From Styela clava (lineage: Eukaryota), in contig NC_135264.1 in NCBI RefSeq assembly GCF_964204865.1, forward strand, positions 10,044,001-10,108,000: a stretch of 64,000 nt of DNA, given 5' to 3'. Made by a program: the position numbers and the translations under genes. This document shows positions 1,839 to 33,800 of the stretch, piece after piece. Numbering within the stretch: position 1 is the stretch's first letter; each line of letters opens with the position of its first letter. A model generated the notes under the pieces. It did not search any database, had not been told where the DNA came from, and saw only the letters and a program-made list of their open reading frames with translations.

Positions 1839-4800
1839 TTAATTAGTGAACATGAACTCGAGATCATAGGTAGACTGGTCAGGATGACAGGTCTTGACAA
1901 CTTGGTTAGTCAAATCTTGTTCCTGTAAAATAGAAGTTCATACAGAGTTTTATGTGATGACAGACACTTTTGACAAGATTAAAAATTAAATACTAAAAAA
2001 AATCAAGCAGGCTCCAAAGAACAACGACCATTTAGAATCAGGTAATTAGTCTAGGTTAAAATACCCAATCAGTTTTATCAGTCTAAAGAAGCCATAACCT
2101 TATGATTATTTGTGTCTGCCACAATAGGAGACTGGTAATGTTCTCATCTGAGTACTCCACAAAATTGCGACCTCATGAGTTGTATACTTCCAATGTTTTC
2201 ACATTCACTCCCCAATTTGCAACGTTGGAGAGTATGTTTTGAGCGCTTTGTAGAATGAAAAAACTCCTCAGTCTTATCCAAAATCGATTGTCCGTAAAAG
2301 TATTTTTGATGTGAGAATAAACAGATTACCTTGAAATTAATCACTCACACATACCTGAAGCTCTGAAACACGGAAAGTCAAGTTTGGAATTTTTTTGTTG
2401 CCACAAAGCTCATTCAATCGATCACTGAGAAATGAATGAACAAACATTATTCCATTACATGAAAAATTCATTGTTCATGCCAGACAAAGCAAACTTAATA
2501 CAAGCACCCCAAACTATACAGTATCGACAAATGCAATTGAAATTGGCTGGCTTGATTCTAACGTTATGTATCATCATTATTAAGTGAACGCATATGAATA
2601 CACAGATGCACAATATACAGAAATAAAGTGCAAAATCATTTCGCAAAAAATACAACGAGGATAAATGATGCCAGAGCAGGCATGATTAGATTGTGAAAAA
2701 TGGGCATAATAAATTAATCAATTAATCCTGATCGATTAGGAAATGAATCGAAAGCAAAACTCCTTTCCGGCACAGTATAAATGAGATTATAGTGTATTGA
2801 AAACCAAAGAAAACAACTTCCTATGAATATTAAAATATCATTAACATTTCTGAAAAAATAAGAGGAATTATGATGAATATTTATTTTGCTTAATCACTTG
2901 TTATTCAATCGAATGTTGTAAGATGAGTCAGATGACCTAATCAAATTTCATTAATTCAAAACATAGGGAATATTTGGAAAATGTTTACTCCCGATTCTAA
3001 ATAAAAAAGCAAGTCTCACAGGCTATCTTTACTGATCATGAAATAAATAGTGGAAGTTTTAAATCCATTAAAAGCTGATCCAGCTGCCACAGTGTATGCT
3101 CCCATATCTAAAGACAAAAATAACATGTTTATTAATATGGAGCCTCAAAAAATAACATGATTTAAATAGAATTTCATATGGTTTTCAAGAAGCCATATTA
3201 TAACGGCAATGCTGTTCAAAAATAAATTTATATATTCAAACACTTTACAAGTGTAAAATATCTTTACAAAATTATTATTGATTACCATAAATTGTGATTT
3301 CATACACAGATAAGAGTTTCAAAATATATGTTAAGATCTGAATTTAAAATAAATAAATGATATTTTAAAAACTATTGTATTCCCTGACACCGGCAGGAAT
3401 TTCAGGAATTTCTCAGACGTCAATACTATTACACACAGTGTTGCAATGCAACTTCACTTGAGGAACAATAACAAAGGAAATTCTTTATTTGATATGTAAC
3501 ATGGTGTAATGTTACCCTAAGGTACTGTACTAAACCATAAAAATATCCAGTAAAGTCCCCAGGACTATTTCTCTTTCTACATATCGTGATTATCATATGA
3601 TGACATGGCACATATTGAATTCATATCCTAGCACACATATTTACTTTATGGTCTATGTCAATTTGAAAACAAACATCCCATGACATATGAATGCGTACAA
3701 ACTAGTGTTTACGTAGTAGATACACAAGCAGGTAACAAACTGCAGGACAAAATTAACAGAATATTATACCATGTTATTCGCTCTAAACAAATTTTATTGC
3801 AATAAGTTGATTTATATTTATAAAGACCATTAAAAGGAAAAAATAAAATAAAATTGCAGGTTTGTTTTGGCTAAATGATGCATTTTCAATATTAATGGTT
3901 GTTAAATGGTTAGGAGATATTTTTTAATATAAGCTGAATTAGGTCATCTTCAGAAATTTGCACAAGTCAATTATCCTATGAAGACTGAATTTGATAATTT
4001 GGACATTGTTATTTTGTATATTCTACAGCCGGAAGTCGACGAAAATGTCAACTGCATTGATAACTTTCCAATTAAAAGTATTAGTCTCCTTCTGAAAATC
4101 AAGATTTAAAATATTAAACATAACTATATTCTAATCATTTTGAGCATGATGGTTCTCAGCTGAATTGCAATAACTTGCAAGCACAAAGAGGTTTAAAGGA
4201 AACTGACAAAAAGGAACATAACCTAATACTGACCTTTCCAAATGATCCAATCTCCGATATCTAGTTCAGGCAGATTACAGTTTTCAATAATTCGATCCAA
4301 TCCGTCACAGGTCGGCCCCCAAACACTTGAAGAAAATTCAAGTGCATTTTTCTCAGCAGTCTGTAAAACAAAAATAACAAGCTTATCTTATAAAAAAAAA
4401 TATTCAGCAGATCGAGACTACTCTCCTATACTTTCTAAAAATTTTTTTTAGTTGATTTTACTAAGTTTTTTAAACACTAACCTTCAGCAAAGTTGGTTTC
4501 ACTTCAGCATGGTCGTAGAACAGACAATTGAAAGATCCGTAGAGTCCGTCATTTAAGAAATACATGAACGCTGGTTCATCAGATCTATCAGCCAAAACAG
4601 CATTAAGAATGGCATCTGTGAGAAAGAGACAATGGTCATTGAATATCAGAATAGCCATTTATTCATTTTTACATACGATTACAATCAGTTTGTTGGCTTA
4701 ATACGATAATGGACATTTCCGCAAGCAGCAACTTCTGTGCATTGGTAAGGTATAGAAATAATTTTTCTTTGGTCTCAAGACTGAGAAAACATCCAATACA

Positions 4801-7800
4801 GCATCAGGTGTAATAATTCATTGAAACGACTTCTTACCAATTTGCCCAACTTCTTTATTACCGTAATATTATACTCCACGCGAGCCCGAATAAATATAAT
4901 TTAACTTTTTACTCAATTATTATCATAGAAATTATACCTGCTTCTAACTCAACATTGCAAATTTAGGAAAATTTATTGAAAAAAAAAAAATTAAATTGTC
5001 ATAAATGCAAACCTTTCGCTGCAGTTTCATCTTCATAAGTCTGTCTATCACGAGAAACTTTACGTTTCGCGATGACGTTGGTAGCGAGGGTGAATGCGGA
5101 GGCCGCAAAATAACGCCCAGGTTCCGCAATGATCTTCAGGTTCTCGAATTGAGGTACAGAGAAAAGATCACTCAAAGTAGCGTTCACAATGAGAGCAATC
5201 TAAAGGGATAAAGTCATCAAATCGAGATTAATCTAGGTTAATCTCCAGATTGATTACAGATTAACTCGATTGATACAAATGAAGAGCGATAATACGCTAT
5301 GGAAAGTGTCACCTTATCTGATTAATATACCAATATGATCTATAGTAGCAAGAGAATTATGAATACCGCTATCCATCAAAGAACACATTTGCTCTGAACG
5401 AGGCCCAAAACAAGCAAAGCTGAAATGTACTACTAATTTAACGACACCAATCTTTCCGTCGAGTAGTCGTGTCAAGTTCAATTTTCCCAACCAGCAGAAA
5501 ACCATCGGTTCCATTACATTCGAAATCATATACATTTGAACCCACGACAATTGCACCTGCATACTATTGCACCTACGGAAATTTTTTTTCACGGATATTT
5601 GAACTCATACTAACCCTAACCCATGGATTTTATCACCCTCATATAGATTCAACCCGTGGATATACGGGTGCAAATGTATGGGTTCAAATGTACGGTCACC
5701 AAAACAATCATATACAATATTGAAGAAAAGATAATCAGATATTTTTACTGTGGAAGGGAAGCCGCGGGGAAATGAAGTTGGTTATCGAGCAGCGACACCC
5801 AAGGTTCCACTATCTAATTTAAAAGATCGGTAATTTCATTTACGGACCTATTGGTATTGTCTGCGAGTACTGTATGGTTTTGCAAAATACATTACTAACA
5901 TATCTTACAAGGCATGGATGAAACCGGTAAAATTTTGGAACCCACAACCTTCATACTATTGCTACTATTACACATACTCCTTCAGCATAAATTCGGAACC
6001 TACCTCTTCTACAGGTAATTGTACATCATTAGTACCAGGAAATCCTCCGCCAATATCAAGCAAATTTATGTCGAAACCAATAGAAGAACCATAATCAAAG
6101 ACTCTACGAGCAAGCTGGAGTGCTTTCACAAATGCTGTTGGGTCTTGACATCCACTTCCAACATGAAAACTAAAGAAATATATGAATTTTGATAATTATT
6201 TTAGGAGGGTATAAAATGGCCGAAATTATTATATAGGCGAAACGGTTATCCATAATTTGCAAAATAAGGCAAAATTCGCAATATCAGTATTACTTAAACT
6301 GATATATACAACACCATAACAATGTCAGACCGCAAGTCAAGGTCAATTGAGACCACCACTTTATGTATTTTATATCTCCGCGATATATCACACTCCTTTT
6401 TTATATAGGCTACATATTACATCGCTAAATATTGATAACGAAAATTTTTATCCCGATAGGGGAAATATAAATATAAACGTAATTAAGGATGACAAATGCA
6501 GGAAATGAGACAACTCATCACTTAATAATCAATCAGCTTTATGATCAGATATGACAGCTTCCTACTCGACAGAGGCATAATCATGTGTTAGCTGGGATAT
6601 ATTTAGCAATATTGATAAATTTGAGTGGCATGAAATCACACAGTAAATTTGTAGGGTTATAAAAGACAGAATTTGGACTCCTTGGCTGAATTTCGGCCTA
6701 TTTTTAAATCAACAAGTTGAAATGAGAATATTAACAAAATAGATGAAGCAAAAAAAAAACACATTGAACCTTTCTGTTCAAGTATGTTAAGTTCAACTTA
6801 AATTTTTCTGGAAATACGGTAAAACTTGGCCTGGAAAATGCAGCAATTTATTATTCCTCTCATTCAAAATTTAATTATGAATAGAAAAATTCAGACGAAA
6901 ACAAATTTATGCAAAAACAATTTACAAGAAACTGTCGTTGCAAAGTTGCAAAAACTTGGTGGCAAACAGTCAAAAAACACAGTCACCAAGGCAATAAAAT
7001 GTTCCTATTTATCTATATCTTCACCTTGGAATTATATTCAAATGTTAAAGTGGTTTTCCTACCTGACGCCGATAAGATTCAATTCAAGTTTTTTAGCGGT
7101 ATCAACAAGCGCCTCACATGAATCTGCATGAGCACCATATTTCATACTGAATCGACAAATAGATGCAGAATCATCAGTCTGGATGCGTAGCACCAAACTA
7201 AAGAAGCAAAATTGTTATTAATAAAAGAATAGGGGAAAAAAAATAGGATCGTACAAATATGCTAACTTTTTTTTGATAATACTTACTTGGCATCCGGAAA
7301 CAGTTTTTTAATTTTGAAAAGTTCTATTTCGTTGTCGAAAACAAGGTCTGTGACGCCATTATCTCTCGCAAATTTTATGTGCGAGGATTGCTTGCATGGG
7401 TTCGCAAAGATGATTTTCTTCGGATCAGCATTGAGTTCAAGCATTTGTTTTATCTCAGCCTAAACAGAAAACAAAACGAAATTTATAAAATGAATAAAAA
7501 TTTCCAACTTTGCTACGATAGTCCTACCTTGCTTGCACAATCAAATCCCATTCCCATGGCGATCATACAGCGAAGCACAGGCTCACTCGGATTGCACTTT
7601 ATGGCATAAAATGGATGGATTCTGGGGAAGATTTTCTTCCACTTTATATGCTTATGAACAACATCTCCTATATCGCAAACGAAGAAGGCATCTTCTCCAT
7701 CCTGGAATACAGAAGATTGACAATCAAAGATCTGTTATTTTTCTACAGAATTTGCGTCTGTGACATATAGAAGCTGAAATACTCATAACTGTTGCAGCAA

Positions 7801-8273
7801 CGACAAGTACCGGTATATCATAAACAATCCCTATCTAGGTGTAAAAAGCGTTTCGATCTACAAAAAAATGCTATGTATGATCCAGGAAAAAAAAACATTT
7901 TAGAACTAATTTTGAATCCCTCATTTGAATTGGTATTTATACTCTCTAATGAATTTTAGAAAAACAGAAAAACTTTAATTATGTTTAGTGAGGTTCAAGT
8001 ATATGACAAACGTAAGTACGTACATACATACAATTACGTGATAAAAAAATAATTTACATAAAAGACAAAACACAACTTAAAATAGGAATACAAGCCAAAG
8101 GCTCATTAAAAAAATGTACAAGTGGTTGGACTTGTTGACAGCAACAAATAGTATTTAATTACCTCACGATTTGCACCAGCTTGGGATTTGACCTTTGACA
8201 CCTCCAAGGCATCCAAGTTGTCAATGACCTCAATCACAGTATTGGTATTACTATCGTTAATAAGTTGCTTCAT
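1839..8273 (-). CDS. ODC1: Ornithine decarboxylase, 11 coding exons, ~482 aa
   Basis: Exons (minus): 8273-8163, 7701-7528, 7459-7287, 7197-7063, 6169-6004, 5199-5013, 4615-4482, 4360-4234, 3107-3020, 2424-2355, 1922-1839. All GT-AG and phase-compatible, 1449 nt. Motifs: PFYAIKCN (PLP Lys), [57 protein letters not shown] (catalytic Cys-Asp), MGAYT, FNGF. The last two exons are supported only by splice signals and frame continuity. Confidence 0.95.
2136..2256 (-). ncRNA. Candidate intronic H/ACA-like RNA in the last ODC intron
   Basis: Stem ACUCUCCAA/UUGGGGAGU, H-like AUACAA (2185-2180), hairpin CUCAU...AUGAG, ACA (2141-2139) 15 nt from the upper stem. Folded by eye. Confidence 0.3.
3507..3641 (-). 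ncRNA. Candidate intronic box H/ACA snoRNA in ODC intron 4233-3108
   Basis: Hairpin - H box AGAGAA (3574-3569) - hairpin - ACA (3512-3510) + 3 nt. 3' hairpin: lower stem GUCCUGGGG/CCUUAGGGU, upper stem UACUGGA/UUUAGUA, pocket 15 nt from ACA. Folded by eye. Confidence 0.5.
5531..5700. mobile_element. Small inverted-repeat element (MITE/HINE-like) in an ODC intron
   Basis: TACATTTGAACCCA (5531-5544) and its exact complement TGGGTTCAAATGTA (5679-5692), extended by TTGCACC/GGTGCAA; internal TAACCCTAACCC. Confidence 0.6.
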
Positions 8274-8751
8274 TGTTATGTTATCAATGGCCAGTCTTGA
8301 TATGATGATATAGATGATTTTTTATCAACAGTGATGAGTATGAGAGGGAGACCACAAGATTTTCACCGCAAACTAAAGAGAAATGTCTAATTATGAAATA
8401 CCCATCCCAAAAGCAAATCATTTTGAGCTATTTTATCACTGACATATATAGATATTTTAATTTTAAAAAATTGCAACGAGTGGCGTATTCTTAAAACGAA
8501 TAAATTTTATTATATTGATCTTATGAAATTAGTCGAATAAATGATATCGTCTTCTGTCCTTCTATTTCTATTAATTTTTATTATTAAATTTTTATGCACA
8601 ATTGGTCGTAAGTTAAATAAGAAAGTACAGGTTAGAAAATTAGATCGTTTTTAATATTTTCGAACATCTCTAAATGTTGCAAAATGATTTTAAAATATAG
8701 ACTTACTTATAAAAACACCAATTTGCAGTGTATGAATGCGCCCGGCGTGTA

Positions 8752-10093
8752 CTAGCTGGGATCCCAGGGTGGTTCAAAGTTAAAGTCGAGCTGGCTACGG
8801 TAGAGACAAAGACCGCCTTCGATGGCAACGTACTTCCCAAAGGAAGGCTGAAAAAAAATTTTGTAAAACACTGCAATGACTAGAATAAAATCTCATTCCA
8901 ATGATTCAAATTAGTATGAATTGTTTATTTTAGTAATGTACCACAAGTATATGTTGCATGTGTTATTCCTAACCCCCACCTGACTATGCCATCCAAAAAT
9001 TATGCCACTACAACGTCACAGAGCTTGCCAAAGGGATGGCCAATACCGAATACAGGAATAGTTCCAACTTTTCGAATACATTCAAAATTATTATTTTCCA
9101 ATATGAAATATCGTATACCAGTATACATTTGAAAATAAAAAACAAGTTTTCCTTAGTGCTATAGTCAGAATCTCGGGTTTCATGTAGTTTCGTACCTAAC
9201 ATACCTCTAGCGGGCGTAGCATGACAATTTTCTCACGTATCAATCCTAACCCCAACCTGACTACACCATCCAAAAATTAGGTCAACACGACGTCACAGTG
9301 ACATAATAGAGCCCTTCAAACTATACGAACTGCCATCCAAGACGCGCAAACAAGCACCGGAAATCAAACAGTTATTTCTCTCGTTTTCTCGTCGCAACGA
9401 TTCCAATAGGAGAGAGATCGATAACGTCAGTTAGTTCTTTATCGACAGCGCCAATGCCATTTCGGGCGATTGTACATATATTTGGCAAGCTCTATGACGT
9501 GATTGTGATGTCGTAGCGACGTAATTTTTGAATTGCGTAGTCATATGGGGGTTAGAATTGACATATCGAAAAATTGTTATGCTACGCCCACTAGAACTAT
9601 GTTAGGTACGAAACTACACCCAGAATCTCCATATCTCGGTAAACTCAAAAAATGATCGAATAAGGCAATTTTTATATTCTTAAATTATCTAAATAATATT
9701 TATTGTCATAATGCTGTAATGTATGATCAATGCCAGAATTCTGAATATTTGAATACAAATGTATTTCTGTATTTAAACAAATCTTCTGATCTTTAGCAAA
9801 TAATCAATATTCAGATATTGCGCAAAACTACTTACTGACTTTATTAGTTCAGCAGTAAATGCTTAGAATGGGCTGTGTCAGTGTGAATCATTAATATTAC
9901 ATATAGATCTATAAAGACAGTAACGTTAGGCCCAATCTGTTAATGCCAATAGCTGGAAGAAAACTGTTTTAATCTGGAAAACAGTACTGCAGTACGGTAC
10001 TGGTATCGGTTAAAACGTTCAAATTTAAAATTCACTTACCAATTCCAGCGACCCCCTGGATGGTAACACGGTAATTTCTTTAAACGACGGAAT
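8752..10093 (-). CDS. AUU-initiated upstream conserved coding region (uCC) of the ODC mRNA, 49 aa, split over two leader exons (10093-10040 and 8847-8752)
   Basis: AAA-ATT-CCG start context; phase-0 intron (GTAAGT at 10039, TTTTTTTTCAG ending 8848). Peptide (M)PSFKEITVLPSRGSLEL|PSFGKYVAIEGGLCLYRSQLDFNFEPPWDPS* carries the PPW and PS-stop motifs of the AZIN1/ODC uCC family. Confidence 0.9.
8938..9034. repeat. Partial copy of the MITE family seen at 9175-9621 and 55425-55734
   Basis: Shares CCTAACCCC(C)ACCTGACTA...CATCC.AAAATTA...ACGTCAC...AGAGCTTGCCAAAG with 55480-55558. Confidence 0.6.
9175..9621. mobile_element. Non-autonomous DNA transposon (MITE) with ~130-bp imperfect TIRs and an 8(-9)-bp TSD
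   Basis: TGTAGTTTCGTACCTAACAT (9183-9202) / ATGTTAGGTACGAAACTACA (9599-9618); GGG...CCC termini; AGAATCTC duplicated at 9167-9174 and 9622-9629. Confidence 0.85.
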
Positions 10094-10170
10094 TTTGAAA
10101 GCTTTCAAATTCCGAAAAAGTAGAAAACACGATCGACATCGAAATAACGCGAAAAGGATCGCGCGAGCAG

Positions 10171-10246
10171 CTGAAAAGGGAATGGCGAAATCTTTTGGTG
10201 AAAGACCTTATGTACGACGCGGTGGCGCTGTTGGATAATGACGTCA
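10171..10246 (-). promoter_or_regulatory. ODC promoter/5' end: CRE palindrome TGACGTCA (10239-10246) and pyrimidine tract CCATTCCCTTTTCAG (TCT-type start or SL trans-splice acceptor)
   Basis: Motifs seen directly in a CpG-richer patch just upstream of leader exon 1; function inferred. Confidence 0.4.
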
Positions 10247-10891
10247 TACTTTCGCGAGTTTTCAGCCGGATGTATGTATGTATGTTTATTCGTCTCGGAA
10301 TACTGTAGTGAGAAATAAATAAATTTCTAATTAATATTTAAGACGTGATGCATGCACAAGACCTCCGAAGATTTCCGTTGAATTTATTTGCGTATTAGGA
10401 ACGGTTTTGTTGGTTAAAATACCTGAAAAGATATACTGAGGCATTAGGATAAAGTAGGGGGTCGTGGCATCTGCCAACCATCTCTGCGTCGGTACCATAA
10501 GTTACCGTATCAAAGTGGAATAGGGGCAGAGTATTACTGCTGTTCTGTGATTGCATTTATTGGATGATAGTTGAAGGTTTATACCAGGATTATAGCACAA
10601 AATTAAGAATTTAGATATTCCCAAGTAGGGATGGGCGATATAGAATACCGAATCTGGAGGATTTGAATCCCTAGGACTCGGTTTCCGCCTCTTCGGCGCC
10701 GTGCGTCAATTTTTGTATTTCTGATAATTTATTAATCAGGGGCGAGCGTTATACTCTCGCAACGAAATCTGTCTTACATGTTTATACTTGTGTTTTCTCG
10801 CAAAGAGCTCGCAAACGCGTTTGCGGCAGATATCAAACACCGTAATCCCAGCTTGGATATTCAGAACGCGAAGACGGCGTTATTGCACCAT

Positions 10892-30874: not shown

Positions 30875-33800
30875 ATGATGAGCACTGTGCCATCAACTCC
30901 AGCATCTTATGGAGGTACAACCCCACTGCGAATATTAAACAAAGGACCTGAATACTTTCGGAACTCTAAACGTTCTGGTAAGTTACTTGGTGTAGATCAG
31001 TGCTTGAATAATTGAATTAAAGTGCCGTATTCCTTGACAGATTTTCTCAACCATATACCAAATGAGGAAGTCATGAAATTTTTTGATTATTTAGTGCCTT
31101 TCTGTAGTTCTGTAGCTTATGATGATTGTATACCGTACCTAAATAAAATTAGTATTACCATTTTTTTCAATATTGAGAATTGGTGAGGTGTCACTGGTCA
31201 TTCAGCATATTTTTATTTCTGATAAGCTAAAATAGCAATGTACGGTATTTCATGAAATTCCTCTAAAAAGATGAGAGCATAACTCATAACTTTCCTACCA
31301 TGATAACTATTTATTAAAGTATAATTTATGAAAAGAGTTTTAACAAAGGATTTATTATATTCAAAACTCAAAATAATAAAGTGGCAAAGTAGTAAGTTTT
31401 GACTTGCGAGCAATCTATGAATCAATCCTTTATATACTCTTACTTGCATGCTACTTTTGAAGTCAGTTTTGAAATTGTGTATCATCGGATGATAACAGCT
31501 TGTTAATTTTCCGATAATGATTTCCTCTATTAGCTTATCATGTTCATTATAGGTATTAATAATTTCCCTGATGTTAAAAAATTTTCATTTTATTTATCAT
31601 AGGAAATGAAAACAGAAGAAAAACTGCAACGGAGAGATTAGAGGCAGATAAATTCAAGTATGTGAAAAGTGAGGAAGTTCGACAGCGTCGTTTCACTTTG
31701 GAATTGAGGACCAGCTCACCTCCAAATAATGACAGTACTGGAACTCAGTCAATGGGTACGGCTTCTACTGGCTCGCCTATCAATATGGAAGAGGATGATG
31801 AAGTTTTAACTGGTAATGATGTTACTGGGGACTTCACTACTGAAGGCATTATGAAAGCTATGGCAAACTTCACCAAATATAACGAAGTAAAGCCACAGAA
31901 TGCTACACCTGTGACATCCAGAAGAAGACAGAATCGTCTCTCCACCGAAGATGCAACTGTTTTGAAACCTGCGACAAAATTAAATAATACAGATGCTGAA
32001 GTACTACATAGTATGACGGCTACACGGAGATTACAAAGGATGAAAAATAAGGCAATACGAAATAGTGAAATCGAGAAAAATAACAGAAATTTAAATGATA
32101 ATGTTACGCCTCCGAGTCCGCTTCTCACTCGACTTCGTGAAAAGCTACATAGCTCGAATAGCCAGTCAAGTAATGGATCAACTGGTAATGCCTTTACGCC
32201 TTCACCTACCATTGCATCCACCGCAGACGAGGGATCAAAAACACAACCCATTATCATGAAATCACCTGAATCTGAAAGCAAAAGTTTCATTCCAAAGAAT
32301 TCCCAACAAACCAAAAGTGTCTTTGCGAGTAATGCACTTAATACTTATATAAGCAAAGCAAAAGAGGGGATTAAAAATGTTCTGAACACCGAACAACGCA
32401 ATGAACGACAACCGAGATCAGCGAATAGCTCAAATGGTCGTAGGTATCGGTCTGCAAGTGCTGGGCCGAATGTTAACAAAACAACCCAATATAATCCTAG
32501 GCTTACAAGCAGTGCAGAGATGGGTCACAATTTGTTATCCGTTACCAAAAGTGAAGCAAGTAATGCCACAAATCCTCTATTGAGTCCGAGGTCGCAACTT
32601 AAACATGTGAGACAAAATTTAAAGAAAGTCAATATTGGGTCCGAGCGTATTCACACTCGAAGGCATACAAACTCGGAGACGAGCGTACCTGCTGAATATA
32701 AGTCTGGACTCAAAAAAGTCAGTGGTACGACTTTCACTGTAAATCCTGCTTTGCAGAAAAAGTCTCAAAACTTCCAAAATGATGCGTCTAATACTGCGGA
32801 AAATGCCATGGATACAAAAGACACTCGTGTTGAAGCAAAACCACCTATGCTGCCTCGTTCGAAGAAAGAAAAAGAGAATATTCGACGAACCGCAAGTTCT
32901 GATTCTCAACCTCATTCTATTGAAAGTTTAAAAAAGAGAACTAGCTCTGTTTCCAGTAAAGAGGGAACTGAAACTGAGGGTGGGTTACTGGTATTAATAA
33001 GATTGTATTCGCTTTAGGTGGAGTGTATTTGTATCATGCATGCCTATTGTTCAGACCATTTTACCCAACCCAGGTTTTTGAAATTAATTGGGGAAAGCAA
33101 ACTCAAGAGATATAGGTAAGTATTCAATTCAGTAAATCCTCTATACGTTTCGTTTCTTCTTATATCAAATATTTGGTTCACAGTGATAATTTTGTAGTAT
33201 TACATTACAGACTTATTCTTTTATATTTTTATAAATTATTTTGGTTATTGAGGGAAAATTAATTACGGTGCGTATGTTTTGATTAGAGCAAGTTTATGCA
33301 AACTCACCCCAAAGTAAAGGAACTCATCTTAGAGGAACGCACTCTAGTACAATGGCTAAAAACTTGTTTAGAAATTGGGAAAAAGATCTTAGACTTAAAT
33401 ATTTACCCATTTATTTCAGAATCTGGATCAAATCTCAACAAAAATGAACCCAAACGCTCGAATTGCAACCGAGTCAAAAGGCGATCTTGGGATATATTAC
33501 ATGCATCTGATAATACGCAATATACCAAAACATCTGGTGAAGAGAACACACCCCCACCATCAATAGAAATGGATACCAATGCATCTCATTCTCACTCAAG
33601 ACAAAGACGACCTCGCAGTTATACTTCAGATCAAAGAAAGAGCAATTTATCATCAAGAATGTCTCTGCCTGAAGGTAAATGCAAACTGTGGCAATACTTA
33701 TGCTATTTATTTCATTAGTAAATCACTACTACAGTCTTTATTAAATGCAGTTTGCCTTCATTAGTCACAAATTTTGTCTCTGAATAAATTTTACAAATGT

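Follow-up and report, generated by a model that had tools for sequence, protein, structure and literature searches.

The window, by which we mean the whole 64,000-nt stretch of Styela clava DNA that was analysed (contig NC_135264.1, positions 10,044,001 to 10,108,000), carries an ODC gene on its minus strand. The exons downstream of the main AUG match the Pfam ornithine/arginine decarboxylase domains PF02784 and PF00278, and they keep the ODC motifs FYAIKCN (with the PLP lysine), HVGSGC, GGGFPG, EPGRY and WGPTCDGLD (with the catalytic cysteine). Because both the domains and the PLP-lysine and cysteine motifs are retained, we regard the host gene as an active-type ODC and not as an antizyme-inhibitor-like protein; judged from these residues, the encoded enzyme is catalytically competent. 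[quoted passage not shown] The features of the leader and of the host gene are as follows, in window coordinates and in the order of transcription.

10091-10093, minus strand: predicted start codon of the uCC, an AUU in the context ttcaaaATTccg; the peptide begins IPS
10040-10093, minus strand: 5′ coding segment of the uCC (18 codons), bordered by a GTAAGT donor
8848-10039, minus strand: leader intron 1 (predicted), 1192 nt, in phase 0 inside the uCC, with 19 ATGs and a MITE-like repeat
8755-8847, minus strand: 3′ coding segment of the uCC (31 codons), comprising the conserved C-terminal half
8764-8772, minus strand: Pro-Pro-Trp codons CCA CCC TGG, where stalling sensitive to polyamines and eIF5A is predicted
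8752-8760, minus strand: Pro-Ser-stop, CCC AGC TAG, with the TAG at 8754-8752
8707-8751, minus strand: untranslated rest of leader exon 2 (predicted), to the donor ATAA/GTAAGT
8373-8706, minus strand: leader intron 2 (predicted), with 4 ATGs inside and the acceptor ctctttag
8274-8372, minus strand: leader portion of exon 3, with no ATG
8163-8273, minus strand: first ODC coding exon, with the main AUG at 8273 and a protein beginning MKQ
3019-7701, minus strand: other ODC coding exons (7701-7528, 7459-7286 and more, to about 3019)

An ATT-started, ATG-less frame that spans two exons and ends EPPWDPS-TAG is present in this leader. The original prediction had joined 10093-10040 to 8847-8752 into an AUG-less frame of 49 codons, and our analysis recovered its coordinates, its ATT, its TAG and its openness throughout. 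With the predicted junction, 18 and 31 codons are joined in phase 0 on the minus strand, and the 49 codons contain no in-frame ATG. The splice sites at 10040 and 8847 proved as well formed as had been proposed: both are canonical GT-AG sites in phase 0, with a GTAAGT donor and a (t)8cag acceptor whose last base is 8848. The C-terminal end reads LDFN-x-EPPWDPS-stop, and the role of its Pro-Pro-Trp as a stall site is taken from published work (PMC9082881, PMC8705083, PMC11058473). Our gene model also corrects the second leader intron, which spans 8706-8373, placing the start of exon 3 at 8372. Under this predicted splicing, the spacer from the uCC stop to the main AUG (8707-8751 plus 8274-8372) amounts to 144 nt.

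Conservation of the C-terminal half

We scanned the whole 377-Mb genome with a loose DNA pattern for PPW-(D/E)-P-x-stop, CCNCCNTGGGANCCNWSNTRR, which gave exactly one match, the uCC site. The reversed control of the pattern likewise gave one match in the 377 Mb, and therefore about one chance match is expected genome-wide. The sole real match lies in the leader of an ODC gene and on the correct strand. Independent evidence came from a profile built on an alignment of ten foreign uCCs, with the window sequence not included. Searched against the genome, this profile returned a single match, at 8755-8817 on the minus strand, with an E-value of 3.1e-7; searched against the six-frame translation of the window, it returned the same piece at 3.7e-11, with the runner-up at 2.7. 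From the unique motif match and the E-values of the foreign profile, we consider a chance origin of the motif to be excluded.

The profile alignment is confined to the C-terminal 21 positions (profile positions 29-49), and the N-terminal 18 codons gave no detectable signal with it in either the genome or the window. The N-terminal half is poorly conserved among the relatives themselves too. Since these 18 codons are without profile signal, the first exon is supported by the context of its AUU, by its donor, by the overall length of the frame and by a leader devoid of ATG. A search of the 46-residue open frame around exon 2 against a protein database returned no candidate; this blank says nothing about conservation, because uCC peptides appear to fall outside what gene callers predict.

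We collected relatives by scanning public contigs, both metagenomic and metatranscriptomic, for the stricter pattern F-x-x-E-P-P-W-(D/E)-P-S-stop, which found 22 loci. True uCCs account for 17 of them; the remaining five (L011, L014, L015, L025 and L029) lack an ODC context and were discarded as chance matches. Thirteen of the 22 loci are mRNA-like contigs of 1.7-3.8 kb, in which the motif closes a short frame near the 5′ end and is followed, 78-161 nt downstream, by a main frame of 405-478 amino acids that begins MK. These long frames are 41-66% identical to the ODC exons of the window, and the MKQ start of the Styela clava protein resembles their MK start. Three further contigs with a uCC (L016, L017 and L023) are genomic. 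A search with ODC exon 5 additionally gave exon-sized matches of 74-79% identity in the ENA contigs P0004, P0007 and P0008. One locus, L027, may be mammalian or even human DNA and was left out of all comparisons. The comparison set comprised 14 contigs (L008-L010, L012, L013, L016-L023 and L028).

The identity of the last ten residues in these relatives is partly forced, because the stricter pattern was derived from the window sequence; it fixed F, E, P, P, W, D/E and P, and more loosely S and the stop. Outside the forced positions, the window has the majority residue at positions -12 (L), -11 (D), -17 (L), -18 (C) and -20 (G), and the commonest residue at -16 (Y) and -15 (R). Position -8 deviates, with Phe in the window versus Ala in 12 of the 14 relatives. 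At the nucleotide level, the Asn at -9 is encoded by AAC in all 15 sequences (the 14 foreign uCCs and the window), and for the Ser at -1 every one of them uses AGC, although sixteen codons were permitted there by the pattern. The stop is followed by TA in every one of the 15, and by TAT in 12. In the codons for Pro, Glu, Asp and Leu, the third position is free to vary across the family; this variation, with the amino acids maintained, points to selection on the peptide.

The predicted AUU start, the intron and the ATG-free leader

Among the 13 mRNA-like contigs of the family, 12 have an ATT that is in frame and 46-50 sense codons ahead of the stop. Its context follows a-n-n-ATT-(c/a)cg, in the forms gccacaATTccg, agcaaaATTccg or gacaaaATTacg, and the encoded peptides open with IP or IT. 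In L019 no ATT is in frame; ATC and ATA are the only candidates there. The ATT of the window, in the context aaaATTccg with an A at -3, fits the family, and the bases that follow it, ccgtcgtt, are almost identical to those of L013. The length of 49 codons obtained with the predicted junction lies within the 46-50 codons of the family and within the class criterion of about 46-52, and the 144-nt spacer falls inside the family range.

The leader is also depleted of ATG. In-frame ATG is absent from the uCC frames of all 13 mRNA-like contigs, and the 11 that were fully analysed lack ATG in all three frames from the ATT to the main ATG. The predicted spliced leader of Styela clava, consisting of pieces of 54, 141 and 99 nt (294 nt), likewise contains none, versus about 5.5 expected from the window-wide ATG frequency (Poisson P about 0.004). 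The ATGs lie instead in the introns, 19 in the first and 4 in the second.

The intron inside the uCC does not seem to be peculiar to this locus. Two genomic contigs from other animals carry a phase-0 intron at the equivalent codon: in L016, aaaATTCCG opens 18 codons that run to GTAAGT, followed by an intron of about 0.86 kb and the acceptor cag/GGC, and in L017, acaATTCCG opens 15 codons that run to GTGAGG, followed by an intron of about 1 kb and again cag/GGC. The two halves of the L017 uCC can be matched throughout to L008, an mRNA in which the frame is unsplit. Because the same layout recurs in L016 and L017, the uCC intron appears to be old and shared rather than a local acquisition. We tentatively raise a further possibility, to which we give well under an even chance, namely that this phase-0 intron is ancient (an ascidian and two other lineages) and that the fixation of AUU-CCG, AAC, AGC and UA after the stop at the level of nucleotides hints at RNA-level determinants acting together with the nascent peptide. 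In the uCC literature covered, we found no discussion of an ancient uCC intron or of such nucleotide-level fixation.

Leader intron 1 contains a MITE-like element whose inverted arms map to 9175-9330 and 8960-9031 (minus strand). At least 2,320 candidate copies of a 156-nt arm are spread over the genome; 40 of them were scored and mostly show 90-94% identity, and the copies often form inverted pairs about 300 nt apart. Intron 1 fits non-coding DNA, since this repeat lies within it. The repeat also overlies a weak alternative ATT candidate near 9059.

We considered whether the C-terminal element is a genuine uCC whose start is not the AUU at 10093, or whose junction differs, with UUG at 10108, AUU-CCC at 10183, an ATT within intron 1 or the ATTCCT near 9059 as the candidate starts. 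The frame is open for at least 30 codons upstream of the AUU, with near-cognate codons inside it, among them an in-frame TTG at 10108 and a second ATT followed by CCC at 10183. The unspliced frame around exon 2 measures 46 codons, 15 of which lie above the acceptor and include three ATT codons, and the N-terminal half, as noted, is without profile signal. A blind search for A-n-n-ATT-(C/A)C with an open frame and an in-phase GT, covering 6 kb upstream of the stop, returned four candidates. Another ATTCC candidate among them reaches 46-48 codons with weak in-phase GT donors, but only the one at 10093 combines a consensus GTAAGT donor with a family-like total length of 46-50 codons. Only at 10093, moreover, is aaaATTccg followed by tcg, a near base-for-base match to L013, whereas the intronic ATT codons lack the family (c/a)cg after the ATT and the candidate at 9059 overlaps a repeat with thousands of copies. 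The two-exon layout is repeated in L016 and L017, and the 19 ATGs of intron 1 would make it unfit for a leaky-scanning leader. Another start or junction is thus unlikely, and we retain the AUU at 10093 and the junction of 10040 with 8847 as the predicted structure.

Upstream of the AUU, one further short frame deserves mention.

10080-10141, minus strand: possible 19-codon AUG uORF in another frame, in the weak context tcgATGt, ending 11 nt past the AUU

This uORF, which may overlap the AUU, would be relevant only if the transcript begins upstream of 10141. Upstream ATGs are also present in 8 of the 11 mRNA contigs of the family. An acceptor-like sequence, cccttttcag/CTGCTCG, lies at 10165-10183 on the minus strand, preceded by the in-frame ATT-CCC at 10183. 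Spliced-leader acceptors are common in ascidians, and this site could be one; if it is used, the mRNA keeps the weak ATG at 10141-10139. A perfect palindromic CRE-type octamer, TGACGTCA, occupies 10239-10246, some 150 nt upstream of the AUU, with a TACATAAG box just downstream of it at about 10206-10213. Together, TGACGTCA and TACATAAG form a possible promoter, and the ATG at 10247, which overlaps the octamer, is probably untranscribed.

An inverted repeat at 10088-10114 (minus strand) pairs the AUU in the minimum-energy fold. We rejected a hairpin over the AUU as a feature of the family, as 8 of 12 relatives leave the AUU unpaired when the minimum-energy fold is computed over the same 60 nt. 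A search of Rfam gave no match within 8000-10600.

Proposed polyamine feedback and its relation to known uCCs

The original prediction assigned the frame to the ODC/AZIN1 uCC class, and this assignment is supported by our sequence analysis: the position, the lack of AUG, the AUU context, the length, the C-terminal motif, the ATG-free interval and the spacer all agree with it. The class itself was already known, as had been stated, with the uCCs of animal ODC homologues published in 2008. The C-terminus of AZIN1 that had been quoted with this prediction is found letter for letter in contig L027, which, as noted above, is possibly mammalian or human. Given these properties, we propose that the frame is the ascidian orthologue of the animal ODC uCC, AUU-started and intron-split, and that it acts as a polyamine-feedback element; we put the probability of this reading at roughly 0.85.

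For mammalian AZIN1, a mechanism that involves eIF5A, polyamines, stalling and queuing has been described (PMC2811004, PMC9082881, PMC8705083, PMC11058473, PMC7397865), and polyamine repression that requires the AUU and the C-terminal peptide, like an eIF5A-sensitive pause at Pro-Pro-Trp, is known only for this mammalian gene (PMC2811004, PMC9082881, PMC8705083). By carrying this mechanism over to Styela clava, we infer the following sequence of events. Most scanning subunits would bypass the weak AUU, allowing ODC to be translated. High polyamine levels would impair eIF5A function, and the few ribosomes that translate the uCC would then stall at Pro-Pro-Trp and possibly also at Pro-Ser-stop. 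Scanning subunits would queue about 130 nt back to the AUU, leading to more initiation there. Such a block would be self-reinforcing, repressing the main frame and lowering ODC synthesis, and the net effect would be a translational negative feedback on polyamine synthesis. Pro-Pro-Trp occupies codons 44-46 of the uCC, about 130 nt from the AUU, and the narrow family length of 46-50 codons would fit a spacing requirement.

The genome contains 16 ODC-like exon-4 matches, this locus included. The 15 others, which amount to a sizeable expansion of the ODC family, are 31-53% identical, and several of them lie in tandem clusters.

C17: ODC-like matches at 8.115-8.160 Mb
C6: ODC-like matches at 7.93-7.95 Mb and 5.60 Mb
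C2: ODC-like matches at 21.00-21.02 Mb
C13: ODC-like matches at 8.22-8.23 Mb
C4: ODC-like match at 10.04 Mb
C8: ODC-like match at 21.47 Mb

We searched the genome with the uCC peptide, and with the profile at E-values up to 10, and found no uCC at any of these paralogues. With 16 such matches in the genome, and with position -8 deviating from the family, the frame could be an evolutionary relic, a uCC by descent that no longer regulates this ODC, with control exerted through another of the 15 ODC-like loci or by antizyme alone. We consider this very improbable, as the open frame, the AUU context, Pro-Pro-Trp, Pro-Ser-stop, the splice sites, the ATG-free leader and the spacer are all intact, a young repeat has inserted into the intron with the exons undisturbed, none of the paralogues has a uCC-like frame and this ODC copy retains its catalytic residues. 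That the frame is open by chance, or that the element is conserved as RNA or DNA rather than as a peptide, is scarcely credible: the nucleotide-invariant AAC, AGC, TA after the stop and ATT-CCG, and the local hairpin over the AUU, would suit it, whereas the single genome-wide motif match inside an ODC leader, the profile E-value of 3e-7, the synonymous third positions that vary while amino acids are kept, the Rfam result and the lack of the hairpin in most relatives (AUU unpaired in 8 of 12) speak against it.

Interpreted as a polyamine-feedback uCC, the Styela clava frame can be compared with three groups of known elements. It shares with the mammalian AZIN1 uCC an AUU start, the lack of AUG, a length of about 50 codons and a place in the leader of an ODC-family mRNA. 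Pro-Pro-Trp stands three residues before a Pro-Ser-stop end in both, at codons 44-46 here and at codons 47-49 in mouse (PMC7397865). The C-terminal stretches are close, and the predicted mechanism is the same. In contrast, the host gene here encodes an ODC that is predicted to be catalytically competent, whereas the mammalian one encodes an inactive antizyme inhibitor; the N-terminal halves are unrelated in sequence, and position -8 is Phe here and Ala there.

With the animal ODC uCCs of the 14 contigs, the frame has in common the type of host gene, the AUU context, a length of 46-50 codons, an ATG-free leader and a spacer of about 80-160 nt. The end L-(D/N)-F-N-x-E-P-P-W-(D/E)-P-S is likewise shared, as is the phase-0 intron in L016 and L017. 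It differs from these relatives in that their SPEG and QGG are only loosely matched here (IEGG and SRGS), in that UAC follows the stop versus UAU-UU in most of them, and in that the hairpin at the AUU is not common to them.

The fungal ODC uCCs and the small uORF of plant AdoMetDC also lie in leaders of the polyamine pathway and encode regulatory peptides with prolines near the C-terminus. The plant uORF even shares the Pro-Ser-stop end, but it starts with AUG. The fungal elements (from Pezizomycotina, Basidiomycota and Zygomycota) and the plant elements differ from the Styela clava frame in having 22-100 codons and no sequence similarity, and both are regarded as independent origins (PMC2811004).

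The uCCs of ODC homologues and AZIN1 were reportedly described by Ivanov, Loughran and Atkins in PNAS in 2008, and the mechanism of the AZIN1 uCC is said to have been worked out by Ivanov et al. in Molecular Cell in 2018. The Styela clava uCC is thus a sound further case of what was reported in 2008 and 2018 and not a new mechanism. The 2008 uCCs, from ODC homologues of six animal phyla and with AUU starts and Pro-Ser ends, are summarised in PMC2811004, and the 2008 species list may already contain an ascidian example; a literature text search combining uCC with Ciona returned nothing relevant.

No new question is opened by this uCC, which adds a well-supported ascidian example to the family and fits the expected deep conservation of polyamine sensing by ribosome stalling and queuing. 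Among the 16 ODC-like loci, it singles out the one that probably encodes the feedback-regulated enzyme. Annotation that demands AUG starts and unspliced open reading frames will miss a regulator of this kind. The leader is compact, about 350 nt once spliced, and suited to reporter assays in tunicates.

Elsewhere in the window, an intronless open frame of 479 codons at 31578-33014 (plus strand) shows a weak match to the FAM110 N-terminal domain (PF14161, E-value 1.9e-5).
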